Below, one piece after another: positions 18,894 to 42,777 of a DNA stretch of 64,000 bases. Source of the DNA: Nageia nagi (taxonomy: Eukaryota; Plantae; Pinophyta); assembly GCA_050084985.1 (NCBI GenBank), contig JBITNC010000002.1:34224001-34288000 (forward strand), written 5' to 3'. The notes under the pieces were generated by a model. That model was not told the origin of the DNA. It saw nothing but the letters and a program-made list of their open reading frames with translations, and did not search any database. How positions within the stretch are numbered: position 1 is the stretch's first letter; each line of letters begins with the position of its first letter. The position numbers and the translations under genes were made by a program.

Positions 18894-20164
18894 CACTACT
18901 ATAAAAATGTGAATTGACGTTAGGGAGGGCATTAGAATTTATTTTCATATTTTGATAGCCTTAGCATTAGAATGGCATCATGTTTTTCACCTTTTTGAAT
19001 TTTTAATACTATTTTTATGCATTTATTGATGTTATTTCTAACATTATTTATGATGTTATTTTTGATATTATTTTTAATGTTATTTCTAATACAATTTTTG
19101 ATGTCATTTTTTATGCTAAAGTTGATGCCAAATTGTAACATTTATGGCATTAGGAGGCATTTGAAATAAGAAAAATGAGCATAGATATCATCAAGAAATA
19201 CATATCAATTATCTAGAATTTAATATAATCAGATGGCTATAACTACATTGCACTCAAATCAATAAGAATCTTTAAAATTAAATTTCTATAAATTTTATAG
19301 TTGTGAATGGTTTCCTATATATGCATGAAAAATGTGAGTGTAGAGAAGGTATAAGAATTATCAACTATGAAATTTTGGTATATACTTATGAATTTTTTGA
19401 TATTATGACTTAATGAGATATCCTTTCATGGAATATGATAAATACAAGTTACCAAAGACATGGATTTCCTTGATAGGCATTGATACTTTTTCATGAAATG
19501 CAACAAACAACAATAATAGTCTAACCAAATTAATCCACCTTTTCCATCATCCTCATATTATACATAAAATTAGATTATTTACAATAGGGTTTATACATAC
19601 AACAGACACTCTATAAAACAAGATTTGTAGCAAATTTTATGATTTTGAATTCCATGATAGACATGTATGAAAAAAGTGGAAGTGTAGAGAAGGCATGCAA
19701 ATTATTTTACAAGATGAACGATATAAAGATAGTTTTATCATTTATAATAATTGGATGATATGCAATCCATGGATACAAAAAGAATACGCTTAAACTCTTT
19801 GATCTAATAAAGCACTTGGAATAAATCCTAACAAAATACCTTGTGTATATAGTGCATACCGATTATGTATATTGACTATTTAGATGTTATCTTTGATGCC
19901 ATAGTTTATGCTAGGGATGATGCTATTGTTGACATCATCTTTTTTTTATTTGATGCTAAACCTAATATCACTTACTACTAATTATTATATCATTTTTTAT
20001 TTTCTAATATTATATCTGATGCCAAGTGCCACTAAATTTGATGCCAAAGATCATTTTTTGTATGCCAACTAGGACACTATTTCTAACCTAAAATCAATTT
20101 TTTTAGAAAAATACACTACGTACTAACACCATTTTTTATGCTAAATGGATTGAATTTAGTAGTG
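18894..20164. mobile_element. Non-autonomous CACTA (En/Spm) element carrying a PPR fragment (Pack-CACTA)
   Basis: Starts CACTACTA at 18894 and ends TAGTAGTG at 20164; 3 bp TSD TAA (18891-18893, 20165-20167); TGATGCC/TGATGTT-type subterminal repeats at ~18960-19150 and ~19890-20070; no transposase. Confidence 0.8.
19270..19840 (+). pseudogene. PLS-class pentatricopeptide repeat (PPR) gene fragment
   Basis: DILSWNMI...ALILFHEMQ and NSMIDMYEKSGSVEKACKLFYKM (19651-19716)...YAIHGYKKNTLKLFDLIK; several stops. Confidence 0.85.
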
Positions 20165-20953
20165 TAAATGAGGCATATATATTAATTCTCTCTCTATCTA
20201 TATGTAGGAAAGCAAAGCTAATAGGTAGGCATGGTAAATATAATATAAATTAGGGTAAAAAATGTTAAAAATAAAGAATTTATTATCAAAATAATATATA
20301 CATGTATAATTTGTAAAGAAACAAAAAAAAAACTAAGTTATATGTATAAAAATAAAAAATTTTGCCATTTTTAAGAGAGACGAGGTGATGGTTATAAGAA
20401 GATATATATATATGGATGAATAATGAACATTATAAAATAAAATAAAAAGCCTATGCACTAATATGGTAAACAAAGGGAATATATACAAAAGAGAAATAAT
20501 GAATATGATCATAAGATAAGAGAAATGAAGGAAATGTAATTAAATAAAGTTTTAAATATATAAAAAATAATAATGAAAATGGAAGAACAAATAAAATTAA
20601 AATAAGAAATAAAAGTGGATCATCGATGGTCTTACGTATTTGTAAATAATAAATAAATAAGGTTAATAGGAGAAAACTGAATGCATTAGAATATAGAATT
20701 AGAAATAGAGAAGCCTAATGAAAGGGAGGGATTAATCTATAATTTTACTAGATAAAAAAAAAATATCATTAAATGTCCTAAATAATACACACATAATAGT
20801 TAGAACCACTAATGATGGTAAATCTATTATTTAAGAATCTCAAAGAGATATAAGAAAAGATAAAATAATTAGACCCTCTAAAATATATCTTATAATGACA
20901 TATAAGAAAGAAGAAATAAGTGATAATAATTGTATCATCATCCAAATATGATT

Positions 20954-21750
20954 AGTAAAGCCTAGCTATCTATGATATTTTTGGTTCCTTACATACAGAT
21001 TTCATCATTCTTATCTTTTAGTAGTTCTTGAAATTTTAACTTGAATAGATTTAGTATTATGAAATAATGAAATAGAATATTTAAAAATAAAATACTAAAA
21101 TAGGAGAGAAAATATCATCATGAAAACACCCAATTTACTTTGGGTAACTTAAGTAACCAAAGAAAGCTAATAACCAAAAGCTCTCCTCTTAGTGAATAGG
21201 AATGGAAGTACAATCATACTTCTCCTCTAAAAGGCTTTACAATTTGCAAGGTATGATGCTTATTTAATCTCAAATGGGAGAAAAAATGCCAAGCATAGCC
21301 TTAAAAAAATAATTTTACACTTAAATCTCTATTAGTATTATCACAACCTTCCTTATGTCTTTCACATACTCTTTTTCTCTTTAGAATTTCCCCTTCCAAA
21401 TAGCTTCATTTATAGTAGTTTTGTAGGCTAAAATTAAAAATAGTATAGTTAAGAAGTTATAATAAATTTATTTCCAATACATAGTGTGATCTTATTTGAT
21501 CATGTGGTTTTGATTTTAGCTTAAAAATATAACCCAATATCCTAAAATAAGCTTTGGGGTATAAAAATAGTGCTCTCTAGATTTACATAGTCTCAAAAAA
21601 TAATAATAACAAAATAAATAACACTTAAAAATCAATCCCATAACAAATATAGGGTGCCTCTAATCAAAACATAACATGTACCAATCAAAAATATAAAGAG
21701 AGGATTAAATGTCATGTTCTCACCATGCATTGGGAAGGGGTAATATCAAT
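20954..21750 (-). repeat. First piece of the split 3' LTR of a Ty3/gypsy element
   Basis: Colinear with 42778-43560 (ttggttccttacat, aaaatatcatcatga, ctcctctaaaagg, ctctctagatttaca, aaaaatcaat); breaks at taatatcaat, where the MULE begins. Confidence 0.85.
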
Positions 21751-22835
21751 AGGCACTAACTATCTAGCTTGTAGAATTCCCCCTGCACTCTAGCATGTTG
21801 TGCCATCCGTTTGCATGCATGAACCACCAAGCCATGCTATGGGGTTATATGCACTTCAATTATCCTAGCCTATACAAGCTTCATTTAACCCTCCATGCAC
21901 ATGGGTCATCAGGTCATACCTCTCATGGTATGCCATGTGGGGTTAATCAAACTTCATATAGCCTATATGCTTTTCAATGTATGCTCTAAACATTGTTTGA
22001 TTAGTTCACTATTCATATTAGTGAGTGTGTCAATAATTTTTGATTAAACTATTATGTTAAATGACCAATTTGGACTAAGTATTGTTCTATTAACTCTAAA
22101 ATCAATGATGCTCGATTAACCCTTGATATCAATGATGTTTGATTATCTTATGTTCACCACCTTGAATGTCTATATCACATATTGAGAATATCATTAATGG
22201 TCTAGATTAATTGAATTGTATTTATGTGGGTTAAACATAGGTTGATTAACCCATACATCACATCACCCCACCACTAATTTATAACATCGCCAAACATCAT
22301 ACTCAAAAATGCCAAAGCAAAGGTTAATCAAAATTCAATTAGATAACTACATTTAATTCATGAGCTAATCAAACTATATTTATTTAGGTTATACATAGGT
22401 TGACTAACTCATAATTCATATTATCCTACCTCCATTTTTAATGTCAAAAATCATTGTAAATGCATTTGTTAATGTGAATGTTAATGGAACTTTAGTTAAA
22501 CTCTAAACGCAAGTCAATTAACCTCTTACCCATATGGCTAAACACATGTGAAGGTCCAATAGTTATATATGAGGGTTAAACAAAGTTTAATTATCCCCCT
22601 TTATATCAAAAATTGGTCATTCTCTTTCACATTATTTTGTGCATGGTTGGATGTGGATGTTGAAGGGAGTTCTAGGACATATAGCGAATCTCAATACCAA
22701 GTAGTTTTTTTCAATTCTTGGGCTCTATTTGTTCATTTTACAATACACAAATATTTAGGAACATCCTAGGATTTAGTTTTTGTTCATAATTTTCATGTTG
22801 CACTACATGAAATTCTACTTATAGTTTGTCAAAAA
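21751..22835 (+). repeat. Left terminal inverted repeat of the MULE
   Basis: Reverse-complement match to 37455-38548, e.g. tgaccaatttggactaag, tgatgtttgattatct, tatcattaatgg, tatttatgtgggttaaa; ORF-track peptides at 21795-21989(+) and 38315-38560(-) are homologous. Confidence 0.9.
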
Positions 22836-22982
22836 ACTCTTATAGTTTTTTTCATGTATGTGTTTTGCATTGCTTGTATTTCAATTATCCTCTTCCCAAT
22901 TTTGAAAACATACTGAGATTTAGGTATCTAGTTATGCTCAGCACTTGGGTATTTTAAAATGTACTTTTAAAATACTTTTTAT

Positions 22983-23660
22983 CACTAATAATAATCTCCA
23001 TAAGAATATTCTTCATGTTTGAAATGATGCAATCGATTCACATCCCTCACAACACTATCTCTTGCAACAATCTTGGATATAAACTTGGTTGTAGTGTCAT
23101 AGTCATTGCATACTCAAATATTCTTCATAACTCTAATAATGGTTCTAGGGGGATTCTTCATCATTATCCTTGACATCTTGTAATGTAGGTATTGTATTTG
23201 CAATAGGAATATACCCTCCATCCTTCATCTCACTTGATAATTTCTCTAATCATCAATAGATGTTCTATGTTTGTAAAGGATTTTCACTATGCACATGGTG
23301 AACAAACATGCCTATAACCGTAATCTAATAGTATGAAAAAATAGTTTCAAACCCTTCTCATTAGAAAAAATAGTTTTAGGGCCTCTTGGCAATTATAATT
23401 CTATAAACACCCAGATATCATTGCATTCCACAATACAACATCTCTTACAAGCATCAAATTGAAAATTTGTAATGCATCAACTAAGCTATTACATTTACTG
23501 TAAGTATCCATTAGACCATTTTGCATAAAAATATTATATTCGAATGATTTTATAATCATATGTTCATGGACCAACTTACAGATTTCCATGGCTCCTAGAT
23601 CAAAATAGGAAAGAAGTACACCAATAAAAATATACCTTTCCAGAATTATGCCCATATTTA
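22983..23660 (-). pseudogene. PPR-DYW pseudogene fragment (PLS repeats, E+ region, DYW C-terminus)
   Basis: NGLMDTYSKCNSLVDALQIFNLMLVRDVVLWNAMISG; LEKLSSEMKDGGYIP; RTIIRVMKNI*VCNDYDTTTKFISKIVARDSVVRDVNRLHHFKHEEYSYGDY. Confidence 0.9.
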
Positions 23661-23699
23661 GCATTAAACAAAAAAAGTTTCAAAAAATTACTCTAGTAG

Positions 23700-25520
23700 A
23701 CAAAGTAACATAGGAATATCATAGGTTGTGAAATCAAAAAATTACTCTCCACTTACCTAGGAATGCCCCTCTTCCAAGGTCAGACTAACCTAGAACTTTG
23801 TAACTCTCTAATTGATAGATTCAATAAATAACTTGCATGTTGGAAAGGTAACCTTCTTAGTCTTCTAGGACAATGTTAGCTTCTTAAAATGAATCTCCAA
23901 TCCATACCTTTATATATGCTTTCATTGTTCAAAATCCCTAGTAAAATGATGAAGTCATTAGAAAATAAACAAGAACAACTTCCTATAGATAGGAACAGAA
24001 GAAAAAGCAAGAATACATCTACTCAAATGGGAGCATGCCTACTTACCAAAAGCAAAAAGAGGTTTAGGATTAAGAAGATTAGAAGCTCTCAAAAAAGTAA
24101 TAGCTATATATTTAGTATGAAGAATTATTAAGGAACAAGAAATACCATGGGCTAACCTACTCCTAAAGAAGTATGTTACAGTTGAGGACCATGTGACCAT
24201 TCTAAATATCCCCTTAGTCCAAGGAGGTTCAATCATATGGAATCATATCGTTAAAGGGACCAACAACATAAAATAAGGATTAGGATGAATGAGAGGAGGA
24301 GGTACATAAGACAAATTATAGGAAGATAAAATGAAGGATTATACTCCTATAAATAAGAACCAATAACTTGGATAACTCAAATGATTCCTCTGAGAAGAAT
24401 GGTGAACCACATTTGATAAATATATAATAGACATATAAAATAGATTCATGAAGAATATGTTGCACATCCTCCATGAAAAACTTAAGGGTTTCCATAGCCC
24501 CACAAAGATATAACTAACCATTTAATATGGATTCACTCTAACTTAGGTTGTTATAAAGCGGGTAGTGGATACCTACAAGTTATGGATATTCAAGAAAACA
24601 AAATAAATTTGAGAAAATTATGGTCTATCTATTGCATTACAAAAATTAAATTATTCACATGGTTAGATTTGCAAAATAATATTTTGACCAAGGACAACCT
24701 CACACAAAGAGGATTCAAAGGCCTAAAAACATGTAGTTTATACAGGAAAGAGGAAGAAAGTGTGAACCACATCTTCATAAAAGGCTCTTATACCCAAGAA
24801 GTATGGACATAATGGATTAAGGATTTAAATGCAATATGGGTTATGATAGATAATCTAATAGACTAGTTTTTTCAATGAAGAAATCCCCTCAACAAAAATA
24901 AAGCACTTTAGAACTAAGCAATGCCAACATTCATATGGACCATTTGGATGTAAAGGAACAACAATATCATCAAATATTCTTACAAGAACCCAATGGAACT
25001 CTACAATATCCTTAAATCAAGATAGAGGAATAATTAATCCTATAATTAAAGAAAGAATTCAAATTAGAGAAGGTAAGAATAGAATCAAAAAATACCACAT
25101 GGTGATACCCACCTTTAAGTTGGATCAAGCTAAATTTCGATGGAGCCTCTAAGGGAAACCAAGGGAGAGTAGGCAAAGGAGTAATGATTATAAATAATGA
25201 AGGTAAAGAAATATGCATGTATGTAGAACCATAAAGTATTATCTTTAGAAACCAAGATGACTCCAATGTAATCTTTATAAGGATTAACTTAGCCAAAAGA
25301 CTCAAATGCGAAAAGGTCATTATTGAAGGAGATTCTCTTAACATTATCAAAGGATTGAACAATACAACAATAATAAAATAAAACATCCAAAACATAATGA
25401 AGGATGCAAACACAAAATATTTATCCTTTAAAGAGTATAAGGCAAAGCATATCTATAGAGAAGGCAATACCATGGTAAATAGACTTGCCAATACAGGCTT
25501 TAGATTACAATATAATATGG
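23700..25520 (+). mobile_element. 5'-truncated L1-type LINE: end of RT, zf-RVT, RNase H
   Basis: YLGMPLF (~23755), SIPLYMLSLFKIP, KIKLFTWL..QNNILTKDNL..RGF, WIKLNFDGASKGNQG (~25120), IIEGDSLNII, HIYREGN. Confidence 0.88.
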
Positions 25521-27342
25521 TCTGATGGAATAATTCCCTTGATCTCCTATAGTAATAGAAACAAAACTAGAAGGAGAGATTGGGTTTAAGATGATCTAAA
25601 ATAACTTCAATAATTTTTAGGAAGGGTTTATTTATCGTGTCATTGGCTCCTTTTAGATTTAACTATCCTCAATTGAGCTTTTTAGCAAGACCAACATGCG
25701 CAAGTAATTAAATATATTTTGCTAAGTTTAACAATGGCAAAATATTTTATTTCCACCTAATTGAAAGATATTATGATACTTTTGAAGAGCTTCTTCTTAT
25801 CTCTCCATTGAAGATTATTTTGAGTTCATTACACTTTAAATTCTTCCTCTTAATTTGATTTTGGAGCATCAAGAAGATGCCATTTGATATCTCAGTATAT
25901 GCTTGTGGCCTTCCTTATGATGCTACTAAAGATTTTATTTGGAAGGAATTTGAGATATACAATAATATAATTATTATAAATAAATACATATTATAGATAT
26001 ACTTCATCATACTCCCTTGTCCAATATATTCAAACATATTCATAAAAACACACATGTGATTTCTCATGAATACACTTCCACTAGATACGAATCACTCCTA
26101 GACAAGAATTTGCTTACATGAATATTGCTTTTCATTGTAGAAATATATAGATTTTTTTATTTGATAAATGGTACTTATAGGCTTTTTGGAATTTATATGC
26201 TACCTTATTATCATGATTATGGAATATTCATACTTAAATTTCAACAAGACATCATTATGGTATTAATGTTGTAGAAAGTAGAAAATATAACCAGGTTTCA
26301 AGTTGGTCAATTTTGTGGGTGGCCCCTCATGATAGTATTGATATCAGAGTCAATATATATTCCATTATCTAAATATTTGAAGGTACTAATATTTCATGGA
26401 AGCTTGGGTTGTTCCTTCCTCTCACTTGGCCTCTTTGCACTTCTAGTTTTGCTCTCACTTCTCTTTAGACACTAAGAGAGTATAGAAGAGAAGCTAATCA
26501 ACAAGTTGATTATTGAATTTTGTTTAAAGGGAGCAAGTTGATAATTTAAATTGAATAAGGAAATAATATATTATTTCCAAGTTTGATATAGTTAATGAAG
26601 AGAGTAAATCCAAGGCTTGGATAGCCAAGTTGACCCATATATTTGACCTTAATCCCATGGAGAATTTTAAGAAAATCAAATTCACCACCTACAATTTAAG
26701 GTACTAGCATTTTATTAGCTACTTTGATTGAACATGATTAAGAAGAGGAGGGTGAACAAAGTGTGTTATTATAAATAAATCTATAGAATCAGTTTGTAAC
26801 CATATTCTATAGAGTTTGAAGGTATACACCCAAGAAGATTACTTCTTGGCTCTCAAGAACTTGAAAAATGTATGGAGATATTGGATCTCCCTTTGTGAGA
26901 TATTGCTTTTTTTGAATGCAATAGTTAGGATTCCATTAATTACAATTGAGTATGTTATTATTGAAATGGATGCTCTCATTTATTTGATCCATTTTAAATT
27001 AAAACTAAATTTATCTTATCTTTCACTAGAAAGTCCAATTTAACTTTATCCTATGCCTTATTTATTTCAAGTTTTAATAACATAACTTGCCCACTCTTAG
27101 ATGTTGTTGTATTCAAAGCTTCATAAATTACTATTATTCCACCTAAAATTAGCTTACATGTCCAATGTGATAGATATTGAAGGAGCACATTGGATATGCA
27201 TGGTATGAATGGGTCCTTGGGCTAGGACCACTTTTTCCAAGTGTAGTGTACCCTTCTAGAGCTTAATCTAAACATACATAATTCATTTAAACTAATTCCA
27301 TATTCATTCATAAACTATGCAAAATTTTAAATTATAAAAATC

Positions 27343-27795
27343 CACTCAATAATGTTTCCAAGGGGGAGTCTTTAACAACCTAAACACAATTGCCAACTTT
27401 TCACTATGCTAGCAAAGAAGCAATTCTTCATCATTATCTTGGACATCCCATAATGTAGGTATTATATTCAGAATATGCCTTGTTCCCTTCATATCACACA
27501 ATAATTTCTCTAATTTTCCATAAATGTCCTATATTTGTTGGTGTGATCTATCTTGTACAAGTAAAGCATATACGCTTTAGTCAACTTCAATCCAATTACA
27601 TTCAGGTGTCTTCCTGATTCCTATATCTCTCATCAATGATATTATTCTTAAAAAATCATCATCAGCTTCCCAACTTAGCATGAATATGTGAAAGAACAAA
27701 ATATGATGAAGCATTTTTAGGCTATAAAATAAAGGATTATTATCACAAATTCCCTTATTCCTAGATTCTTATGTGATCTACAAGCACCAAGTAGA
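27343..27795 (-). pseudogene. PPR E/E+/DYW fragment including the HSEKLA motif
   Basis: LLGACRSHKNL; MRDIGIRKTPECNWIEV; DRSHQQI*DIYGKLEKL; DVQDNDEELLLC*HSEKLAIVFRLLKTP (HSEKLA at 27391-27408). Confidence 0.88.
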
Positions 27796-28464
27796 TTGTG
27801 AATTCTTCTAAAATTTTCATGCATCTCTATCAGGATACTCACAACCACAACATTCAATGAAGTATCATTTTCAATTATATACACTTAAAAGTAACTATAT
27901 TAATTAAGTGCTAAGTTATTTCTTTAGTTGATAACAGTCATGATAAGGCATTTGGGTTGATGATGTGATTGTTACCTACAACAAGGATCAGATATTAAGT
28001 TGAATTTGGGTATTGGGTCTTATGGTACAAAGGTATGAATGGACCAAAAAAAAATTATTTTTGAAGTTAATTCCTTTTCTATATGATAGCTTTGAGTTTC
28101 TTTCTTATTTTTTTGACATAATTATTTTGGCTTGCAAATTATTTTATATATGTCATAATTTTTTTTTACTTGAAGGTTAAATAGTGAAAGATAATTAAGA
28201 ATCACTCTCCTCAAGGTATAAGATTATTTGTAAGATAATTTCTAACATTTATTGTTGGTTGAATGTTATCTATTTTCTTAAATTTTTTCTTCTTTCATTC
28301 TCATAATTACTATACCACTATCCCACTCCAACCCTACAATCTACAACTATAAAATATTCTTAAGAAACAAGGTTTTCATAATCACTTATTACTATATGTA
28401 GGTAATTAAGTTCAATTGATATTGTGATATCATAAATCAACAACATTATTTATTATAAAAATAT

Positions 28465-28555
28465 TTTTTAAGTGATGGAATGGTTTATAGTCCTTATAAT
28501 AATGTTACTTGCAACATTAATCGAGATAACTTGGTTGTAGTATCACAATTGTAAA
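28465..28555 (-). pseudogene. Short DYW C-terminal fragment
   Basis: Frameshifted NCDTTTK...VA..IIIR...FHH, similar in nucleotide sequence to 23020-23100 (aacttggttgtagt shared). Confidence 0.55.
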
Positions 28556-28759
28556 TGAAACTCTAATACAAATCTTTTTTAGTCATCCCCTAGTAATCAA
28601 TGAATGAATATCACCCATTCTTTAAGTAGTTGAAATGATTGAATGGGTCTACAAAATTTTTGAAAAAATTATTAGCTTATATGTATTAGGAAGGAATTGG
28701 ATTTATTAGAAAATTACATAAATTGTCTAAATATCTATTAGGTTATATGTATTAGATTA

Positions 28760-29170
28760 TATATACTGAAGTGGGGCTTGTGGAATATTTGAAAAAGGGA
28801 AAATGTATAAATATTTTTATTTAAAAGGATATGGAAATTTTTGATAAAATGTTTCTTTTGATATACATGATACAAATGTAGTTTCATAGATTGCAATGTT
28901 CACTAGTTATAAAATAATGGATTTTCTAAAGAGACTCTAGAGACTTTGAAACAAATGCAATTTTTTTATGTGTAAAGAAAATCCCTACAAACTTTTGACA
29001 ATAGTCTTCCAACATGTGCCATCATGGGAGTCCTAATGGAAGGTATGGGAATTCATTAAAGAGTATTTGAAAATGGTCTCTCATTGAATGTTATGGTTGT
29101 GAATGCCTTGATGGTGAGTGACTTGATAGATATGTATGCATAATGTGGGAGAATACACATGGTCAATAGG
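28760..29170 (+). pseudogene. PLS-class PPR fragment
   Basis: FDKM...NVVS*IAMFTSY...NGFSKETLETLKQMQ; LPTCAIMGVLMEG; VVNALM...DMYA*CGRIH. Confidence 0.75.
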
Positions 29171-29204
29171 GATCCTAGTACATGAGTACACATGGCCAAT
29201 GTAC

Positions 29205-29460
29205 TTACTCTTTGAACACACACATATAATTCATGTTTTATGGGCATTTTGATAATGATGTTCAAAGCTTCCTCAAGATAGCCTACACGACCAAGAAGGT
29301 CAACAATGCATGCATAATGATTAATCCCAGACATAATGTGATAAGAATCACTCATGCCATTAAAATATATTTATAGCCCTTATCCACTATATTTGCATGG
29401 CTACATGTAATTAAAACACAAATAAAGATTATTTTGTTAGGTTTGGATCCAAATTACTTC
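29205..29460 (-). pseudogene. PPR L2/S2 fragment, tail-to-tail with the preceding fragment
   Basis: PNKIIFICVLITCSHANIVDKGY; MSDSYHIMSGINHYACIVDLLGRVGYLEEALNIIIKMPIK. Confidence 0.88.
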
Positions 29461-29556
29461 ACCAATGTCATTTTTTGGTACTTCTTCAAGTCTAAATAAG
29501 TATTTTAAGGGAATTTGGATCAATCACATGATTTGTTCATTTTATCAAATTTGTAG

Positions 29557-31700
29557 GAAATAATATGTTTTAGCAAATGGTGAGGGGTATGAAGTGGAAG
29601 AAGTTTTTCCAAATGCCTATGCAAGAAATGACTACTCAGGATTTTTTTTCTCAACTTGATCTATCATGGACTAAAGTTCAATGCAAAGGAGGTAAGAAAT
29701 ATTTGGTGGTAGCTATACCTATTGGAAGATTATACAACTTGAAGAGAGGTAAAGAATATCATCTAGATACCCAATAATCTTTTATACAAAAGAAAATGGT
29801 TAACAACATCAATGATGAAGCTGATGATAGCCACCCTCCACATTTGTCTGCATTTAAGAAACATTAAATGTTAGTATAGTTTTTTTGTTTCATTTTGCAT
29901 AAAATATACCTTTTGATGTTGTAAAGTGTAATAAATTTATTAACTATTATATAATTATTGAATTGTAGTTATTGGTGCTCATATGGATACCAAGATAGGC
30001 ATACCTCATGTCCACCAAAAAGGATGAAGGTTTTTAAACAAAAGAGAGGATGCTTATGTTAATTTTTGGTTAAGGTATATCATCACCTTCCTACTATTCA
30101 TTTCATCATTTAAAATTATTTTAAACATTTTTGATAAGGATGAAGAGCCTTTCAATGGTGTTGATGAACCATCAAACATTGGGCAAACAATGTATACACC
30201 ATATTTATCACCTAAAGTGGTAGCAATTTTGAAAGCATTATTGTCCATAGGTGTATCCCATGACCAAATCGTTGAAGGGGATTACTTGAGTCAATTATTG
30301 GATGGGTTTCCAATAGATAGAGATGAATTTATAATGAGGTATGTGAAAAATGTATATAATAGGATTAAAGAACATACGATGTGAAAATATAACATGGATT
30401 CACAAAGTGTGAATTTTTGGGTTACAGAGTTGAAAGGAAATATCTTCATTTATAGTCGATCACATAATATGCATGAGAGTTTTGTTTTAGGCTATCAAAT
30501 TCCATGAATGTTGGAGAAGATGGTATCATGTGGACCTATTCGTATGATTTCAACAGATTCAACATTTAATACTAACAATTATGGGGTATGTAAATTATCT
30601 TATTTTTCTTTTCAAAGCATAATTCAACATATGTTAGGATTTTTAAAAAGAATTAATTGTGAATTGTAGTAACCGTTATATACATTTCTTGTCTTTGATG
30701 AGAAAGATATTAGTGTACATGTATCATGGATCATTATGCAACATAATCAAACATAGGATGTTCAATAATGGCTATAATGACTACATGATCAGTGCAAAGA
30801 ACATCAACTAGATTGGAAAGTAGAAGCCTTCATGATAGATGGTTGTGAAGCTAATATAGAAGTGATATAATAGGTAAATGAAAAACTATAAAAATACCTA
30901 TAAAATGTTATGATGGTATGTTTGTATGCTAAATGATTATGTAATCTAATTCATCCTCCAAGTATTCATGACAAGTTATTTCTAAATGAGTGCAATAGGA
31001 GGGTATTCACTTGTCAGAATCTACTATGTTGTTGATATGTACATAGGGCATGGTTGAAAAATACCATCAAGCTTGTATCTAACAAATATTTCCATACAAA
31101 CATGTTGTTCACGTTGGGATAAGTTATGCATAGCATTGATAATGCGAGCATAATAAAGAATCTTATTTCAGATTTCATTAATGAATTTGTAGATGAAAAG
31201 AGGTTCATAGAGTACTTCATTAGCAATTGGGTGGAAAATGATAAGTTTGATAAGTTCCAATCCATAGTATCCTTTAAGATAATTTAGACTATATTGATAC
31301 CATGAACTCTATTACTAAAGCCTAATTATGCCTTTTAATGTGTTTTGCAGTAATGTGTGAAAAAAGCTTACTAGATTTTGATCATGCTAATCAAGAAACT
31401 AATAATTCCATTGAGGCTTCACAAAAAAGAAGGGCCATTCTACAAGTACAAATATAGGTTAAAGAGATACCATTCTTGGAATAACTATAAGAGAGCAAAG
31501 AGTCTTGAAACTGTATAGGAGAGAGCTCTTCATACTCTAGATTCCCATTGTTCTCCCCATGAAACTATTCAAGATGCATATTGGGTATAAAGTCAAACAT
31601 ATCAATCCACCAAATACCTTATAGCCAATTATGGAAAATAATTTTTTAATGTGAATGTATGTGGGTTGTATGAGGCAATTTTTGCTAGCATACCATGAAT
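29557..31700 (+). pseudogene. Intron-containing MULE transposase with SWIM zinc finger, decayed
   Basis: YWCSYG (29970); DSQSVNFW; FVLGYQIP; ISTDSTFNTNNYG then a GT-AG intron (~30586-30669); PLYTFLVFD; AFMIDG; degenerate CxxH (YVHRAWLKN); NQETNNSIE; SWIM CECMWVV*GNFC*H (~31650-31692). Confidence 0.85.
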
Positions 31701-31842
31701 ATTAAAACACTACTTGAATTTGGATGCTCCAAACATGTTGCATTTTATTTGAATGCAACCCCTCTTAGTAAAAATGCCTCTAATGTTAATTAAGGCAACT
31801 TTAATGAACAACCTACTATTGAACAAATAGAAATTTTTCTAG

Positions 31843-31957
31843 AAACACAAATTTCTCTATAAACACAAATTTCTTTAGGAACACCACAAACACAAATTTC
31901 TTTAGGAACACTACAAACACAAATTTCTCCACAAACATAAATTTCTCAAAACACAAA
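31843..31957. repeat. Tandem ACACAAATTTCT-core repeats (18-27 bp period)
   Basis: About 6 copies of aaacacaaatttct. Confidence 0.85.
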
Positions 31958-32944
31958 TGTGAATCACTTTTCTATTGTAGGAAGTAAAAAAATAGTATTT
32001 TCTCCACAAATGAGAGCTATATTGGATATGTTTATTTATTTCATAAAGAGCATTCAAGATAGAAATAAATCTCAAAGAGTCATAGCTCTGGCTAGAGAAA
32101 TAGAAAGCTCAGATGGCCTCAATTTTGTACCCAATTTTAATAGATCTCTAAAAATGGAAAAGATTTGCATTTCTCCAATCTATACAAGAAAAAAGAGAGG
32201 AACAAGAAATACATAATTGATAAATGTTAATGCTCATGGGAGTGAATACGAGAGCTATGAACTTTCTATCATGAAAAAATATGCACATCCACCTTGCCAC
32301 TCAAGTCCTTTTTCTTTATATTCTGCAAAAAGGTAAAATATGAATTATAAAACCTTTGTATTTATGTTTTTCATGTTCTAATATTGATATTTGTATTTGG
32401 TTTCAAGTATTGTAGATAATATTGGAATATGATCTTTTCATAGGCTATCATTTGAAGGGGAGATATCTAATGCAACATCTTTGATAGCAAATTTAGAATC
32501 TAATATTGATGTTTAGAATGAATAAATATATTTAGTTTCAATACGAGCTAAATACACCCAAAAATAGTAATGAACTTGTATTCAATTATGACAATGTATT
32601 GCTTTTTAGAACTAATACCTATGCAATATTATTGACATATCTTTATAAATTCTACTTGAAGTATGCTACGAAGTGGTTATTTTTAAATATTTGGTTATAG
32701 GTAATGATTGATATGAGTTGTAGTTATTTAATCATGGTTATTTTCTATTTACAATATTGTTGTTATATTCTTGTGTAAGCAATATCATCCACTAAGCAAA
32801 TGTTTTACCTTCCATGATGAAAGAAAGTTCCTATGGTTATGATATGGTTGCAAAATGATATAATGTGAGAATGCTGCTATGATGAATGATGAATGTTTGC
32901 AAAGCTTAAAAAAAAATTTACAATATCTAAAAAAAGCAAATATT

Positions 32945-33320
32945 TTTGGGTTATACCCAGCTCATTTAACTCCATGTATCATAAATGCAATTTGATTAAC
33001 CCAATCTATTAGTTTCAACTTAGGTTATATGCAACTCATTTAACCCATCGTAAATGCATTTCAATTATACAATTTAATATTCAAGTTCTTCTAGTTATAC
33101 ATAGCTCATTTACCCTGTATCTTTATTTAAATTTATTTAGGTTACATGTAGTCTATTTAACCTATTGTAAATATATTTAGATTATTCAATTTAATATTCA
33201 AGTTTTTTTGGGTTATACGCAATTTGTTTAACCCATATCCTCCATTATGGATTATATACAGCTCATTTAATCCATCATAAATACACTTTTATTAACCCAT
33301 TTCAATTAACCTATGATAAA
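32945..33320. repeat. Degenerate GGTTATACATAGCTCATTTAACCC repeats inside the MULE
   Basis: About 6 copies with irregular spacing; similar to tatttaggttatacataggttgactaactc at 22381-22410 in the left TIR. Confidence 0.75.
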
Positions 33321-33379
33321 TGTAGTTCAATTTAAACAACTAAGTTTAATTTTTTTTTGCATTTCTTGATGTGAGCAAG

Positions 33380-33545
33380 TTTTGAAAAAAAATGCAAAAT
33401 TTACTTAGCACTTACTTATAGTAAGAAATGCAAAATTTACTCAAAATTTACAACAAGAAATGCAAAATTTGCTCAAAAACTTATGCAGTGTCTGCATGGA
33501 CCAAAACAAATGGTGCAGATCTAGTTTGATAAAATTTGCTCAAAA
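33380..33545. repeat. GAAATGCAAAATTT(A/G)CTCAAAA repeats
   Basis: 3-4 copies at ~33390, 33425, 33457, 33530. Confidence 0.7.
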
Positions 33546-33644
33546 CTCACAAATTATTTGAAAACATACAAGGTGAAAATCTAGTTTGATTTACTACAAT
33601 TCATATGTACAGCAAGGATGCCTCATCAAAGTACAATCTCAAGG

Positions 33645-33820
33645 ACTACAATGATCATTGGATTTGCACATAATGGGTTATCTGAATAGGATATATAGAC
33701 TTTTAAGCATATGCCATTGTTAAGAGTAAAGATAGCCTTTGTAGCCTTGGCCAACATTCTTCTAGCATGTGCCACCATGGGAGCTCTAGAAGAAGGTATA
33801 GATATACAAGATAGACATGT
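33645..33820 (+). pseudogene. PLS-class PPR fragment
   Basis: TTMIIGFAHNGLSE*DI*TFKHM...LANILLACATMGALEEGIDI. Confidence 0.8.
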
Positions 33821-36800
33821 ATACAAAATATGGAAGAAAACACAAAACTCACAAATGAGAGCTCTATTGCTTACAAAATGAGATTGAAAATTCTACAAGA
33901 ACACCATTCAATTTACAATTCAATTAGTCACATGTAAATTCCATAATTTCAATAATCAAAGTAACCAATTACAGTAGATAATAATATCTAAATCCAATTA
34001 ACTATAGAACACCATGTACTATTACAAAATCTAAAGCAAGTAATAGAACTTCACAATGAATAATCAATAAGAGATACATTAAATTGTCCCCTCTTCAAAG
34101 TGATGACTTGCCAAGTATGTAAATATTCTGAATTAGATAAATGATGATATGATGATTATGTGTTTAACCCATGCTCCTATTTATATATAAATGTAACCAG
34201 TACACTATATGATGACTTATAGATGAGATATTCACTATTATGGTTTAATCTACAAAGCTTCCTCTTTTACTCTGAAACATGTAAATGATAGTCTATCGAT
34301 GTATAGTTATTTATTAAAACATGTATCATTTTCTACATTAAAAGGACTAGCATATCCTTTACCTTGGAGAAAGAGCACATTCCTACAAAATTCATATGTA
34401 ATCTTCTACATATTTTGCAACTTGCTACTCTGTTTTTCAAAAGAAAAAGGATGTAATTTGTACTAAGATTGCAATAAACTTCTATTTTTATCTTAAACCT
34501 ATGAAATTAGGTAAGAAAGTCACCTCTAACTTGATAAATTTATGATAAATAGAACTAATAATAATTACACACTGTGATCATGAGAAGTGGGGTGTAATAC
34601 ATGTATGTTTATTGGCTACAGTTAAGAATCTACTACTTATCAATTTTGTGATCCTAATGAACAAAATGCCATAAATGGAAAGAACATAAATTTTGATGAT
34701 AGCCTTGTTTCTTTTTTTTTCTAGTTATTTCTATGTTCCTTCTTAGATGTTGCTAAATTTTATACTACAAGCACTATTGTTAAAGTCTTGCAACTTGGGA
34801 GACTATGATCACCATAATTTGTAGTTAATATTGTCATCTCTTTATCAAAATATTTATTCATGCATCATATTTCACTAGGTTGACATAAATAGAGTACCAT
34901 TAGTGGAAAAATATGAAGGAACATGTTGATTTGTATACAATTCACAAAATAAAGTTTAACAACATATTAAATAGTATGATAAATGATAGTTCATTGGGGT
35001 TTTTTTGAAAGCTAAAAATTATTTCTAAGACATATAAAAAATAATGGTAAGTATTTTATTTTGTTTACATGAATTATGATTATGATGATTGGGTTTACAT
35101 GGATTGGTAAAATATGATCTTATATTTTTTCAATTACTCTTACATAGTTATAGAATTTACATTTATATATTTGAATTCTTACATGTTGAAACTGATTTGA
35201 ATTTATTTATGTATGTTAGGATACCACTAGAATTACCATGGAGAGTTCCAATTTTATCTAGTCCTATGAAACCATTGATTGACCTATGCATGCTCACCTT
35301 ATAACAATCAAAATAGACCTCAAGATTTGAATCTTGCAAGTGCTACTAGAATTCTCTTGGACAATAAGGAACCAAAGGACTTCACTGTTGATTGGAGGTT
35401 CAACAAATGAACTAGTGATTCTAGGACATAAGCTAACCTACAACATCCATAGATTTGAATTGAGTTACTTGCCTTACCAATTAATGAGTAAAAACCTTGT
35501 TATCAACTAATTAGTAAATGGTGGATGTCATTGTTAAATTTTGGGCTATAGGTGTTGACTAAGAAATGTATATGTGGAAATTTAAATTTCTCACCTATTG
35601 TTTTATTTTTATCAAAGTATGTATATTCGACCTACTTCTCATTTGGATCATCAATAGAAGCAACTCCATATTTCCATTTGGCCCATCAACAACAACCTCC
35701 TTCTCATTTGGCTCTTTAGTAGATCCTAGATGACTGAAAGGACATGGAAGATTAATATGCCTTAATGCCCCTTTTTGATGGTGAGCCTATCTAGTGATGA
35801 TGCATTTTCATACAAATGGACTTTTATGTGAATGACTCCTTATATGAACTATACAAATTTGGATACAAATAAAAATAGTAATTTATCTTCAAACTATATA
35901 TTCATGAAACTAAACCTTTTCATGATTCATTTTACTATATCATCAAATCTTAACTTGTAGTAACAAATACTAATTAAAAAGTATTAAATATAAATATTTA
36001 GTTATTTTACAAACTAAACATAAATTTAAAAGATAAATTAAACATTTTTTTAGTAAGGTATAGGTTTAATTAATATAAATGGATTTATGTTGCATCCAAA
36101 AACCATATACAATATAGTTTGGGATTGCTTGCATATTTGGTACATAGCTTAAATCAATTAGACTTTCCACTACCATTGACTCATCCACAAGTGCATGTAG
36201 GTCCTATAAACTTTTAGTGTTCCTTTTAAATTTCCCTATTATCAATTCCTCTAATTGTTATAGTTCCATACATATCTCTAGTTCCATACATAAGTGTCAA
36301 CTAAAGCCATAGGGGCATTAGCCAACACATATTTATAAACTAACAACATTAGACCCTAGTGTTGGGGAACTTTTGAATATAATGTCTTTCACTTTTTCAT
36401 CGACCTAGTGAGATAATTACAAAGATAGAATGGAAAATTTACAAAGCTACCAAGAAAATGGTTCATGAAAGATAAATGAAGATCATTTACAACTATGGAT
36501 ATCCTCTCAAGAGTGATATACTTCACCAACATATGTTGAATTGTGATCCATTTCCTTGGTGGGTTTCATGCTGCATATCCTTCTTATGGAGGTGGAAGTT
36601 CACAAACTATATATATAAAGAATTTGATATTATCCTATTTATCATATGTTTCTCTATGAATCAACCCTCCAATATGAGTGTGCTTGACAACTGCTACAAT
36701 TGTATTTTCATAAAAAGCAAAGGAAATTCTTTCAACTTCCACTTGAGCATTATTCCATGATACCACTACTTATTGAGATCATTCAATATCATGTACCATG

Positions 36801-37454
36801 AATACCTCAATGAATCAGTCCAGAACCTTACTACATAAAACATACCATAATCTTCTATCATTTTTAATACTTGAGCATTTTCCAAGTTCCACTTGTAATA
36901 TTATCAACTCGAAGCTCGAGGGTTTTCAACCTAACAATCGAGAGATGGAATCTGAGCACAAGGATTATTTTCATTATCTCATATATTATTGTCTTTGCAA
37001 TTCATATTTAGCTTGTTCAAAATTGAATTATGAACTACAAATATAGTACCACAAACCACCATGTGGTATAAACAATTGATAGTGGTTTTTTATCCATATT
37101 TCAATTTTTGGATAGACTACAAAGATAGTATCCTACCTATAGGATGATTGATATTGGTTTATGAAGTAGCAGTATTTTTTATCTCCCATATTAGATAATT
37201 GTAAGATAACAAATGTATCATAAAATGATCACAAATCCTAGTATAAAATAATCAATAAAAATCTCTCAATAGTGATATGAACATTTTGATAGGCTTTTAA
37301 CATATCTATCTTGCCTAATATTTCAAGCACACTAGATATTATTCTCAACTTCTTGTTATCCCTTTTCTTATAGATTAAGTTAAATTTGTCATCAAGAAAA
37401 ATTGTGTTAATCAATGTAGCAGATACAAGTGATTCCCCATGTGTAGACAAATTT

Positions 37455-38548
37455 TCATGGACTATAAAGATTGTAGGAAGTAGACTTTCATGGAGTGCAA
37501 TATGAAAAAAATGAATTCAAAAGTAAACCTAGGACATGCCTAAACATTCATGTACTACAAAATGAAAAAATAAAGCTAAAAATTTGGAAAAAAATACCTA
37601 TTATTGAGCTTCACTACCCATCCAAGATCTCCCTACAACATCCATGTCCAAGCATATGTATAGAACAATGTGAATGAGAATAAATAGCTTTTGATTTGTA
37701 AAAGGGGTTTAATTGAAACTTTTTAACCAATTAAGTACCTTCACACAAGTTTAATCGTATGGATTAGATGTTAATCAACCTATGTTTAGAGTCTAATTAA
37801 AGTTCAATTAACCTTTGCATAAACAAATGCATGTACAATTATTGGTGATGTTCAAAATTTTAGGCAAGTGATATGATGTATAGGTTAAGTAACCTATGTA
37901 TAAAGACCATAAATATAATTTGATTAACCTTGTTTTTAGTGTGTTTGAGTATGGTGGTTGGTTACATTATAAACTCAAGGTAGGGTAATGGTATGTATAG
38001 GTTAATCAACCTTTTAACCCACATAAATATAGTTTGATTATTCTAAGCCATTAATGATATACTCGATATGTGAGATAGACTTTCAAGGTGGCAAGCAGTA
38101 GATAATCAAACATCATCAGTACCAGGGGGTTAATCAAATGTCATCAATTTTGAGATTAATGAAACATTGCTTAGTCCAAATTGGTCATTCCAAATCCCAG
38201 ATTAATTGAATGTTATTGATATGCTGACTAATTCAAATGCTAGATAATTGAATGATGTTGAGAGTGGACTACTTAAATAGTGTTTAGATCATGATTAATT
38301 GAACATTGAAATGTTTAGGGGCTAAATGAAGTTTGATTAAATCCACATGGCATGCAAGGCCATGGTATGCCTTGAAAAGAATGACTTGATGACCTATACA
38401 TATTGAGGATTAAATGAAGCATGTTTAGGCTGGGACAATCAATGGTGTATAATACCCATGGCATGGATTGATGGATCATGCATGCATACCGATGGGAAAA
38501 CATGTTAGAGTATAAGAGGGGGATTTTGAGGCTATATATCCAACACCT
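37455..38548 (-). repeat. Right terminal inverted repeat of the MULE
   Basis: Reverse complement of 21751-22835; mismatches appear mostly to be transitions; rich in GGTTAA/TTAACC motifs. Confidence 0.9.
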
Positions 38549-38700
38549 AATATCTATCAATATGATGACTTATTCAAGTGTGCTACCAAAACCCACGCAT
38601 AGAGCTCCATATCATATATGCTCCACTAGGTCCTCCTTCTACACATGCAAATTGAGATAGTTGATCAGTTAATTGAAATATATGATTGGTCCATTTGTTA
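38549..38700 (-). repeat. Second piece of the split gypsy LTR
   Basis: Matches 43555-43665 and the reverse complement of 51790-51915 (cacatgcaaa.tgagatagttgat, aatatatgattggtccattt). Confidence 0.8.
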
Positions 38701-40535
38701 GTTAATTATTTTCTTCAATTAAAAAAATAATAATTTTGAAAGGGACCTTCACCCTTTTATAATCTACCTTAGGGAACAAGAAAATAGAGTAATAAAATTA
38801 TAGAAAAAAAGAAGATTAAAGATCAACATTATGCTAAAAATTTGGGATGTACGATGCTCAATATGGCATTGATGCATGGTGATTATTTATATAATCTTTT
38901 TCTTATATATGGTAGTCTTCCCCAAAAGATTTATATAGAAGTTTATTGATCTATTTACTTAGGTTGAGGCAAGCTTAACTCTTCTACTAGTTTGGAATAA
39001 ATATCCTACTAACATTGGCGAGTTGGCTCTGATAGTTAACTAACCTTATTAGGGATGTGATTTATATTTGATTGGAAATTAGAGGGATATTATATATGAA
39101 ATAATTATTTTAAAAAATAATAAAAGGAAACTTTAAATAAGACTCTTGCACCACCTTCATTATGATCAATATCTTCACTACCAATGCTTCTAATGATTTT
39201 TCTTAATTTTTATAGATTCTTGCATTTTGTTGTAACCATACAGTCCACAGATATCCAATTGTATTTCCATTCTACATAGGGAAGCCTCCTTTGTACCCAC
39301 CACTCCTTAATTATTTTTGGTTGGACCTAAAATCCACCCTGAATGTATTTAGCCATTTCTCCCACATAATATAAGCAAAACAAAACTCCATGAAAAAATG
39401 TCTCACTATTTCCTTATTTTTGAAGTAAAGAAATAAGATCACATGTCTATTGATAAGCTTATAATAGTTGATAATATTATTAAGAAAAACTAACAAATTG
39501 AAGGATTTCATCCTTAGAATACCTCTTATTTTTCATAGGTTCTTTCATGGCACTTCCTCAAGAACATTCTCTAAAACACTACCATATACTACCTTGAATG
39601 TGTAGGATTTTGAAGTGTTTTTGGTCCACTCATGTTTTTTTCATCTATTGAAAGGATAAAATAATCTTTGAACCTATTTATTATATTTTAAAGAGCTCTA
39701 CTATGACTTCCATCTCCCTCTAAACTTGTCCAAGAAAATTATCCATCTTTATTCTTCACTATGCATACTTTTAGGTAACAAACCCACTCATTCTATAGGG
39801 TAGTTTTGAGTACTAGGATATTGGTGAGGGACTCAATGAATTTAATTATCTCTAATGACTTTAATGCCTTCTTGAATATGGCACCAAACTACTGATCCTC
39901 CACAAATTTGATTATCTCTCAATATTCATGTTGGATCAAAATTTTGAAGATATTTTGCTTTGATAACATGCACCTATAGTTCCCCTTTTGATTTTGTAAT
40001 TTTTCAAACTAGCTTAGTGGCTAACACCTTATTTAATACTCTTAATAATTTTAAACCTAGACCTCCATATTTTTTTAGTAAATGCAATTCACAAGATGAT
40101 ATGTATTCCTTTTCTGTACTCCTTTTGAAAAAACAATTCTACATATGGCTTCAATTATATCTACTATCTTAGCCAAAATTTTAAATGTTGATAGCATAAA
40201 CAAAGGGATGCTTTGAAGGGTTTATTGGATCAATTGTATCTTCCTTACCATACCAAGATAGTTGTTCCCTCAAGACTCAATTTTATTGAGGATGTTTTCC
40301 ACTACTGTCCTAATGAATGGATTCTATTTGACTAGTAAAAAGGGGAAGGCCAAGGAATATAGAGGGAAGATTGTTAATGTTCCAATTCATAATGTCTTTA
40401 ATTCTATTTTATCTTATGTATGGAGTATTCATAAAGTATATATAGCTCTTGTGAAAGTTAATTATTTGTTTTGATGCTTCTTCATATTTTTTCAAGATTG
40501 GTCCATTTTGATTATAACTTTTCCATGACTTATCC
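38700..40535 (-). mobile_element. 5'-truncated L1-type LINE inserted in the same LTR
   Basis: Minus strand YEEASKQIINFHKS...NLPSIFLGLPLF (~40340-40490) and zf-RVT-like RMKSFNLLVFLNNIIN...EIVRHFFMEF; 3' boundary approximate. Confidence 0.7.
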
Positions 40536-40539
40536 TTAC

Positions 40540-40830
40540 ACGGATCTATAACTTTGTATGCTATTTTTATATTTTTATCCTTTTATTATTTTTTCCTTAT
40601 AGTTTATTTGAAAAATACATGAAACATCCAACTAAAATAGTTTCCACATAGAAGGTTCATTTCAAATGTTATAAAAATCATCAAGAATCTAGAAGAGAGT
40701 TCTTTATAGTGAAATTATATTTTTGGTGATTTGATACTATCAAAATTTTGGATTACTCCTCCTCAATAAGAGAGATTTTGATCCCTAATAAAAGAAATTG
40801 TGATCCTCAAAAGCTTTAGAATAAAAAATT
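40540..40830 (-). repeat. Third piece of the split gypsy LTR
   Basis: Matches 43700-43920 and the reverse complement of 51530-51770 (tttatttgaaaaata...aaacatc, ataaaaatcatc, ggattactcc). Confidence 0.75.
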
Positions 40831-42770
40831 ATGGAAGACATATTTCCAATGGTACTTCATACCACCATACACTACAAGAATACACTTTTTGATCAATCCA
40901 TGGAATCTAATGTAAAATATCTCCAATTTTTACAAATGGTAAGTAGGATCCTCTATGATCTCGTACTTCCACTTTATCTCTAGGATGCATAAAATGTGCC
41001 TCTTTTTATTAAAATATATCCTCATGCAATAAGAAGATGTTTTCTTAAACTTTGGATTCTTCACTATATATTGAGTATAATATCCCTAAATATAAGGTAT
41101 GGTCTCTCATTGCAATAAGTACTAGATTTTGAGAAGAATTAAACAAACTTTTCATTGGTCTTATTATGGTAAAAAGAGATTGAATTTTACTCAAATGATA
41201 CTATACAATAAAAAAATTACCATCCTTAACAAGATGTTACTTATTCTATAACCAAAAATATATAACCTTCCTACAAAATAAGTAAATACTTTCCAACTTA
41301 TGCTACAAATATCATGATAAACTACATCTAGTTTAACTTCTTCAGTATAATCAAAATTAATGGTAAAATTTAGTGTACATTATTTTGTGACTTGCATATT
41401 TGTATTCTTATTCACCAATCCAAGTGGATAAGGATGTGGATAACAATGAACCTTAATCTATAGCTTTCATATCAACCCTTCTAAATTAAGATTAACTTGA
41501 GAATCAAGATAAAAAAGAACATCAATCTTGGTCTTCTTAGCTTGGAATTTGATATGGAAAAGTTAAGTTTATTTCTTCTCTTCATATTTGGAAGATGAAC
41601 CTTTCAAACCTATGAAAGAAATATTCTCATCAACATTTGTTGTACTTTCTATTTCATAAGAATCTTTCTTTTCCTCTTTATCTTTTGATATTAAAGCATT
41701 CTTCTTTTTCTACCCTCTATTAAGTTTTGTTGATTTCAACTTAGGATGAAATTTGCAATATTTCTCTTCAACATATCCCATTAGTTTACAATTATAATAT
41801 TATTATTTCTTATCATCCTTATTTTTTAAACAATTAATTTTCTTCTTATCTTTAGGCTCATATTCTTTAAATTTTTCACAAGCCTCAAGATGTGTAGCTT
41901 AAACAGAAACTTTATTTGAATTGTTCAATTTAAAAAGTAGAAGTATGTGCTCAAAATGAGAAAGTAAACTACCAATGTATTTATACAATTTTTTCTTTTT
42001 ATTTAATATAATACCAAGTGTATTTACTCTTTTTCTAAATTTGGTAGTATAGTCTTGTCTTGAGGAAGATTTTATCACTCCATAATAACCTTTGAAAAAT
42101 AACAAAGTGGATAGAATTTATCCCTTATTATCTTTATAGACTCTCTACATGTATGAATATGAATCTCTACATGTTTAAGATGTATTTTACACTAAGTTAG
42201 AGTTGAAACTTAAAATTTGAGAGTAGCTAATTGAATCTTTATCTTATCATCCATAATTTGTTGAACTCTATAATAGACTTCAATTTATTTTATCCAAAAG
42301 TTTATTTTCTAGCATTAATTTATCCATCATATGTAGGTGAATCAAAATTTTCTTCAAACTAAATATGATATTTATTATAAGTAAAGAAAGAAGTATTTGC
42401 ATTATCATTATCAATAATTCACTTTCATTTGTAACTCTTTGTTTTGATTCTCCTCCATAAGAATTCTTATTACTCCTTACTCCTTATCTTACTTCTTCAA
42501 TAAGAATAGACATTAGCTTCATCATATCTTTAAAAGAATTCATTTCCCTAAGAAATGATTTTACTTCATGTATGTACTTCTTTGTGCACTTAACCAAACT
42601 CTTGAGCTAATTTTCAAATCTCTTTCCATAAGGGTTTCTTCTCTCTTGTCTCTTTTTTATCTAGTTAACATATAAGATCACTAAACATAAGAAAATATTG
42701 TCTTGCAATATTAGTTCCAACATTACATAAGCATAATACCATATTAATCATACTCTAGCTTTGATACTAA
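40830..42770 (-). mobile_element. Decayed internal region (gag, protease, pol remnants) of a Ty3/gypsy element
   Basis: Degenerate PBS TAGTATCAAAGC (42758-42769, minus); KIQLATLK, YTTKFRKR..LGI, LYKYIGSL, degenerate zinc knuckle, LFHIKFQAKKTKIDVLF, HPYPLG; most of pol is missing. Confidence 0.75.
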
Positions 42771-42777
42771 CATAATT

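Follow-up and report, generated by a model that had tools for sequence, protein, structure and literature searches.

A decayed Mutator-like element with long inverted repeats, a transposase pseudogene and PPR-E-DYW gene fragments in Nageia nagi

Mutator-like elements (MULEs) are flanked by target site duplications (TSDs) of 9-11 bp, typically have terminal inverted repeats (TIRs) of 100-500 bp and may contain multiple TIRs (PMC3310237). The autonomous plant MULEs MuDR, Jittery, Hop and Os3378 (PMC9168764) combine long TIRs, with termini beginning GG, with one transposase gene in which an RNaseH-like MULE domain is followed by a SWIM finger. Pack-MULEs, which are non-autonomous by definition, instead hold host gene fragments between MULE TIRs, with several pieces rearranged (PMC3310237, PMC5861414), while the barley element Abermu (Hvu_Abermu) is an 8.2-kb autonomous MULE with an extra, possibly captured, opposite-strand open reading frame (ORF) between the 5' TIR and the transposase gene (PMC9168764). 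Here an element with a total span of ~16.8 kb is described from a stretch of 64,000 nucleotides of Nageia nagi (Pinophyta; contig JBITNC010000002.1, positions 34,224,001 to 34,288,000), hereafter called the window, in which all positions are counted from its first letter. It is likely that this is a Mutator-like element of the autonomous type, that a repeat copy received it in a single insertion which duplicated 9-11 bp of target, and that its cargo of pentatricopeptide repeat (PPR)-E-DYW fragments had been acquired earlier.

Compared to the systems above, the element lies within the known range of MULEs, being of the autonomous type with captured fragments, and is not a new kind. With the autonomous plant MULEs it has in common the 9-11 bp TSD, the long TIRs, the termini beginning GG and a single gene with a predicted MULE domain followed by a SWIM finger. 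However, its TIRs are ~1.1 kb long as against 100-500 bp (PMC3310237), its arms are ~74% alike, it reaches 16.8 kb in total, and its gene is a pseudogene whose nearest relatives have no Pfam MULE match above the cutoff, their best match being PF21056. Like the Pack-MULEs it holds rearranged host gene fragments, here PPR-E-DYW, between its TIRs, but it is far larger and has a transposase pseudogene (29559-32321). Similar to Abermu, it is a large MULE in which an additional coding region, of possible host origin and on the opposite strand, separates the 5' TIR from the transposase gene; Abermu, however, has TIRs of 138-145 bp, intact ORFs and very many recent copies, whereas the extra sequence in the Nageia element is a recognisable PPR-DYW fragment, is found on both sides of the gene, and everything has decayed. 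A third TIR-like block inside the element and a tandem duplication within the arms recall the MULEs with multiple long TIRs (PMC3310237), although the internal block consists of arrayed motifs that resemble the arms only weakly and do not amount to a clear extra TIR copy. The element stands out by the length of its TIRs, by PPR-DYW cargo that flanks the gene on either side and by a transposase closest to a ZSWIM/FAR1-like branch, and a long-TIR (~1.1 kb) member is added to the Mutator superfamily.

The ends of the element and the repeat that it interrupts comprise the following features.
21751 to 22835, plus strand: left terminal inverted repeat, starting AGGCAC... and rich in TTAACC/GGTTAA
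37455 to 38547, minus strand: right terminal inverted repeat, ending ...CCAACACC; junction read directly
20945 to 21750, plus strand: portion of the host repeat to the left of the insertion that cuts it; the final 10 bases, 21741-21750 (TAATATCAAT), are the left copy of the TSD
38548 to 38686, plus strand: right part of the host repeat, with a further break at 38687-40524 and a continuation at 40525-40788
51544 to 52363, minus strand: uninterrupted copy of the host repeat, the empty-site reference, with TGATATCAAC present once

A sensitive BLASTN search of the left arm against the window aligned 21761-22820 with the reverse complement of 37478-38538 at 69% identity over 1122 columns (E 4.7e-157). 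Gap-poor blocks reach 74-78% identity at best, and a global alignment of the arms gave 73.6% identity over 1030 aligned positions, corresponding to a Kimura two-parameter distance (K2P) of 0.33. A preliminary description, made from the sequence of the window, had given the two ends as reverse complements of each other; the inverted arms are real, but at ~70-74% identity they are much more diverged than that wording implies. The arms, ~1.06-1.1 kb in length, both reach the junctions exactly, and the element termini differ mainly by transitions (GGCACTAAC versus GGTGTTGGA). The density of TTAACC/GGTTAA motifs is 6.4-7.4 per kb in the arms (7.4 in the left one) compared to 0.2-0.7 per kb elsewhere, a 15-30-fold enrichment, and the left arm also contains a ~158-bp tandem duplication (22208-22341 / 22366-22498). 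By analogy with MuDR (PMC3310237), the TTAACC motifs and subrepeats may represent transposase binding sites.

The host sequence, given as a gypsy LTR in the preliminary description, is confirmed as repetitive, the window containing three copies of it. Its left part is 85% identical to the uninterrupted copy (21300-21749 versus the reverse complement of 51909-52363) and its right part 76% (38555-38686 versus the reverse complement of 51786-51914), while the left part also matches 42769-43485 at 76%; the K2P between the interrupted repeat and its sibling copy is 0.18. The repeat resumes across the element, as had been proposed: when 21601-21750 is joined to 38549-38700, the flanks align over their full length with the uninterrupted copy apart from 13 surplus bases, which correspond to the duplicated target site plus a 4-bp slip. 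The TSD predicted at the same time was recovered with its TATC slip, since TAATATCAAT stands on the left, TGATATCAAC occurs once in the intact copy, and the right TSD copy at 38548-38561 (TAATATCTATCAAT) reads TAATATC[TATC]AAT. The two TSD copies are identical except for this one slip, and their length is 9-11 bp, varying with the choice of AGG/CCT or GG/CC as the termini.

Between the arms lies the decayed transposase gene, of which the following parts were recognised.
29559 to 32321, plus strand: spliced MULE/SWIM-type transposase pseudogene, from collinear tblastx with the related loci L001-L018 and tblastn of the proteins P0005 and Ginkgo P0031
29559-29795, 29907-30606, 30656-30867, 30976-31257, 31338-31418, 31435-31712 and 32133-32321, plus strand: transposase exon blocks, borders approximate
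31650 to 31691, plus strand: SWIM zinc-finger remnant CECMWVV*GNFC*H, of the form CxC..CxH, with all four ligands kept and two stop codons

The relatives were reached through an 83-residue piece (30133-30381), which was searched with phmmer against 1.84 billion proteins and gave four short fragments that were used as stepping stones. The cluster of these four short proteins, combined with a word search, led to P0005-P0011, all of which end in ..MDSTF.TNKYG followed by intron read-through, and an alignment of P0005-P0011 scanned against JGI metagenome contigs yielded 18 loci (L001-L018). Transposase exons were searched singly. The stretch 29559-32321 is collinear block by block with the 18 related loci in tblastx, a GT-AG intron after ..NNYG is conserved in the window, L002, L006 and L017, and the motifs DSTFNTNNYG and FMIDG are preserved in the window gene. 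In tblastn, P0005 matches the window with E 1.6e-39, and P0031 (EukProt Gb_01440, by its name a Ginkgo gene model), located by a search with an ORF of L002, matches 29970-31587 with E 1.9e-37. In P0031 itself, PF21056 (ZSWIM1-3 RNaseH-like) scores 35.8 bits against a cutoff of 27.2, and PF10551 (MULE), with 26.4 bits, falls just below its 27.6-bit cutoff, while single exons of the relatives give just weak ZSWIM1-3 matches in Pfam. PF04434 (SWIM) is above its cutoff in the downstream ORFs of L002, L005 and L008, and in P0032. ESM Atlas clusters point to ZSWIM1-3, FAR1 and MULE at 0.85-0.93, as leads only, and an AlphaFold2 model of the exon-1 protein P0007, based on a 17-sequence alignment, has a mean pLDDT of 49, with the Cys/His region below 50. 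The spliced MULE/SWIM transposase named in the preliminary description is supported by the collinear exons, the Ginkgo homology and the SWIM remnant. Judged from this homology, the window gene is a pseudogene of a MULE/SWIM-type transposase, with a predicted catalytic domain that is homologous to the MULE clan and placed nearest the ZSWIM/FAR1-like branch. In-frame stops are found at 30382-30384 and 30505-30507, with further stops downstream, and there is a frameshift near 30128-30148. A small tandem array of 18- and 27-bp units (86-93% matches) lies within the gene at 31831-31958, after the SWIM remnant and ahead of the final block of exon sequence.

PPR-derived sequence is located on both sides of this gene, together with an internal motif array.
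22988 to 23679, minus strand: PPR fragment 1, a PLS-type PPR with an internal deletion, fused to the E2 end and to DYW up to the C-terminus; reads outward, toward the left end
27320 to 27795, minus strand: distal part of PPR fragment 2, with E1, E2 (..CNWIEVD) and the N-terminal half of DYW; from motif scan, translation and weak E_motif/DYW Pfam matches
27796 to 29215, no strand: copy-specific block splitting PPR fragment 2, with inverted PPR-derived arms; missing from L016 and L017
29216 to 29397, minus strand: proximal part of PPR fragment 2, with L2/S2 (..HYACIVDLLGRVGYLEEALNIIIKMPIK); in head-to-head arrangement with the transposase gene
32910 to 33340, plus strand: internal array of ~110-bp subrepeats with the TTAACC motif as in the TIRs, in a single orientation, ~600 bp downstream of the gene
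33618 to 33880, plus strand: PPR fragment 3, a PLS repeat piece reading outward, toward the right end; tblastn with the PPR ORF of L006, E 1.7e-8

Fragment 1 contains the DYW_deaminase domain (PF14432) at 40.4 bits (cutoff 24; E 2.7e-10; profile positions 52-93 of 93) on 22988-23113, has PPR and PPR_2 Pfam matches on 23404-23679, and is matched in tblastn by the PPR ORF of L006. It has CNDYD in place of CxDCH and YSYGDYY in place of CSCxDYW, so that the catalytic and terminal Cys are replaced. Such Cys-to-Tyr changes are G-to-A transitions, as expected for decaying methylated DNA. In fragment 2, HSEKLA is found at 27391-27408 and the sequence ends after NLKFC, short of the CxDCH motif; the proximal part is matched by the PPR ORF of L016 (tblastn, E 8e-11). 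The block that splits this fragment has inverted PPR-derived arms (27796-27878 versus 29039-29162) and also holds a DYW C-terminal piece (28463-28568, minus strand) and a PPR piece (28863-29140, plus strand). A simple miniature inverted-repeat transposable element was considered for 27796-29215 and rejected, as the arms are PPR-derived and further DYW sequence lies inside. On the motifs and matches given here, the cargo source is read as a PLS-class PPR-E-DYW gene, present as fragments only, with stops and replaced Cys residues. Six PPR fragments had been counted in the preliminary description, a fair number, and their PPR-DYW identity was correct, but the pieces can be traced to a small number of C-terminal PPR-E-DYW fragments that underwent duplication and rearrangement, some of the pieces lying within the copy-specific block.

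Two diverged relatives of the element, L016 and L017/L018, bear on whether this cargo travelled with it. At the nucleotide level L016 shares 70% identity with the window over 29500-30404, and L017/L018 share 62% over 29577-31754; their genes are close relatives of the window gene and likewise have stops. In L016, positions 152-376 correspond to window 27758-27795 plus 29215-29397 at 74% identity, upstream of the gene and in the same orientation, while in L017 positions 9782-10141 correspond to the reverse complement of window 29216-29345 plus 27558-27795 at 73%, downstream of the gene. The proximal part of fragment 2 is 74% identical to L016 188-376 and 73.5% to L017 9782-9913, and its distal part is collinear with L017 9915-10141 at 73%. 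The two halves of fragment 2 are contiguous in both L016 and L017, with the block 27796-29215 missing. L017 also has matches to the DYW parts of fragment 1 at 10163-10207 (80%) and 11028-11194 (65%), a match to fragment 3 at 3756-3876 (70%), and a smaller inverted PPR piece upstream of its gene. The order of PPR (minus), gene (plus), subrepeat array and PPR (plus) is common to the window and L017. The 102-bp gap that separates PPR fragment 2 from the gene showed no clear homology to L016. Identity between the window and L016 or L017/L018 is 62-70%, a divergence far beyond the K2P of 0.18 between the host repeat and its sibling. The shared layout therefore predates the insertion, and the homologous PPR-E-DYW pieces beside the transposase in these loci indicate that the cargo predates it too. 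The sequence comparison supports transport of the PPR pieces by the element over a later arrival, and goes part of the way towards the check proposed in the preliminary description. The earlier proposal that PPR modules were mobilised with the element is supported for the pieces that L016 and L017/L018 also have beside the transposase; the 27796-29215 block is specific to this copy.

Taken in order, the proposed course of events would be as follows. A MULE of the autonomous type, with ends formed by ~1.1-kb inverted repeats of TTAACC-rich subrepeats, would have possessed a spliced transposase gene, whose product comprised three parts: an N-terminal region rich in Cys and His, a catalytic domain of the RNaseH-like MULE type and a SWIM finger. 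Its lineage would have gained C-terminal fragments of a PLS-class PPR-E-DYW gene, reading outward on both sides of the transposase gene, presumably by the usual repair mechanism of the Pack-MULE type. The MULE would then have inserted as a single unit into one copy of a retrotransposon-derived repeat, duplicating 9-11 bp of the target. Subsequently the gene would have accumulated stops and frameshifts, the arms would have drifted to ~74% identity, a 5'-truncated long interspersed nuclear element (LINE) would have landed inside, and a 1.4-kb block with more PPR/DYW pieces would have been added. Past autonomy is suggested only by the now-dead gene.

Several observations weigh against this scenario. 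The distance between the arms (K2P 0.33) exceeds that between the host repeat and its sibling (0.18), which fits only with arms that were unequal at insertion. Arms identical at insertion would imply a change of ~0.165 each, nearly exhausting the 0.18 of the host repeat, and the TSD copies are identical but for the slip. It is simpler to assume arms that already differed from each other at the time of insertion, which is probably the case. BLASTN found no further arm copy elsewhere in the 64-kb window, and a search for the window TIR in L001-L018 found it in none of them, so that L017, with the same interior order, has no TIR homologue. The relatives are, moreover, contigs of environmental assemblies. 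The transposase exon pieces of the window gave no match in Pfam, the MULE domain being assigned via homology to P0031 and the weak matches of relatives. PPR-like DNA also occurs outside the element, at 19405-19858 and 45642-47265, where it is 59-69% identical to the PPR piece of L016, and some PPR pieces could be secondary arrivals.

The alternative which survives best, unlikely as it appears, is a composite or multiple-TIR element, in which two related units, namely a left transposase unit and a non-autonomous PPR-bearing unit extending from the internal array (32910-33340) to the right TIR, moved together by their outer ends. MULEs with multiple TIRs have been described (PMC3310237), the array forms a third block of TIR motifs inside the element, in a single orientation and with a density of 13.9 motifs per kb, and it has a weak direct similarity to the left arm. 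However, the similarity of the array to the arms is just 63-69% and confined to short stretches, there is no internal TSD, and L017 has the same order of gene, array and PPR, so that the layout looks ancestral and not like a local fusion. Slightly less probable again is that the PPR-E-DYW pieces were not borne by the MULE but arrived after the insertion within other nested transposons. The copy-specific block at 27796-29215, with its PPR/DYW pieces and inverted arms, and the PPR fragments outside the element in the same window would be in line with such late arrivals, but the two halves of fragment 2 (27320-27795 and 29216-29397), like the DYW stretches of fragment 1, have collinear counterparts beside the transposase in L016 and L017/L018, copies which diverged before this insertion. 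A single MULE that brought its cargo along as it inserted is preferred over either. It is also highly doubtful that the outward-reading inverted cargo is a retained working part, giving double-stranded RNA against PPR-DYW editing-factor genes by read-out from the TIRs, or that the family is a vehicle which scatters PPR-E-DYW modules and seeds new editing-factor genes; outward-reading PPR-E-DYW fragments on both sides of the transposase do persist in the lineage copies at 62-70% identity. A local inverted duplication, or two unrelated insertions flanking ordinary DNA, can practically be dismissed, as the arms, just ~70-74% identical and with no second copy in the window, nevertheless run to the junctions with a MULE-type gene between them, and the flanks fit together precisely as one copy of the repeat, in which a 9-11 bp site is duplicated that is single in the intact copy.

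The element as it stands in the window, the single MULE insertion favoured above, is immobile, non-coding and long dead. It is without working parts, and its value lies in annotation and in the history of repeat families, not in new biology. In this respect the locus offers a clean and datable transposase-bearing MULE carrying fragments of an RNA-editing factor gene; the window itself supplies the empty-site reference, and diverged relatives show inheritance of the cargo within the lineage.

Further observations concern the related loci. In L016, ~330 bp between the PPR piece and the transposase gene (711-1038) resemble the host-repeat family (window 21510-21718, 43279-43345 and 43854-43966), and this host-repeat-like stretch suggests that L016 may come from the same or a related genome as the window. 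The contig ends of L017 (1-127 and 11118-11244) are 100% identical over 127 nt, pointing to a circular or tandem assembly, and subrepeat arrays with 46-113 bp units and a GGTATAACC..GATTATACC motif flank its transposase gene at 2709-3291 and 9150-9710. The loci L001-L015 (e.g. L002, L006, L008 and L014) form a second, better preserved group, in which amino-acid identity to P0007 is ~70%, the exons are intact and the introns conserved, and P0031 (Gb_01440) belongs to their wider family. No inverted repeats were found around the intact relatives within 11.7 kb (L014) or 6.8 kb (L008), and L001-L015 may represent either active elements that extend beyond their contigs or a domesticated gene. In L006 an intact PPR ORF (156-848, minus strand; PPR_2 95.8 bits) lies head to head with an intact gene (2863-3546, plus strand), ~2 kb apart, which is the relative arrangement of the PPR fragment and the pseudogene in the window.

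One more feature is nested within the element and inflates its size.
23700 to 25600, plus strand, borders approximate: 5'-truncated LINE fragment with the tail of the reverse transcriptase (RT), zf-RVT and RNase H
Its presence, already noticed in the preliminary description, is confirmed by zf-RVT (PF13966) at 66.8 bits on 24498-24809 and RVT_3 at 23.7 bits (cutoff 21.6) on 25382-25522, and its 5' truncation marks it as a later nested insertion. In the remaining ~5.3 kb of the interior (25600-27320 and 33900-37454) no coding remnant was recognised and no match to the related loci was found; this sequence shares just short repeats with 48322-48487 and 8396-8560. Rfam gave no match over 20000-41000.

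The same host-repeat copy contains a second insertion of 1838 bp at 38687-40524, after which the repeat resumes at 40525, corresponding to 51787 of the intact copy. This insert begins with TGGTCCATTT, the same 10-mer recurs 27 bp before its end, and no inverted ends were seen. Elsewhere in the window, direct repeats of 265 bp with 99.6% identity (13119-13383 and 15512-15776) surround gag/protease/RT-like ORFs (13344-15510), and 13119-15776 looks like a young, short element of the long terminal repeat type in a GC-richer stretch.

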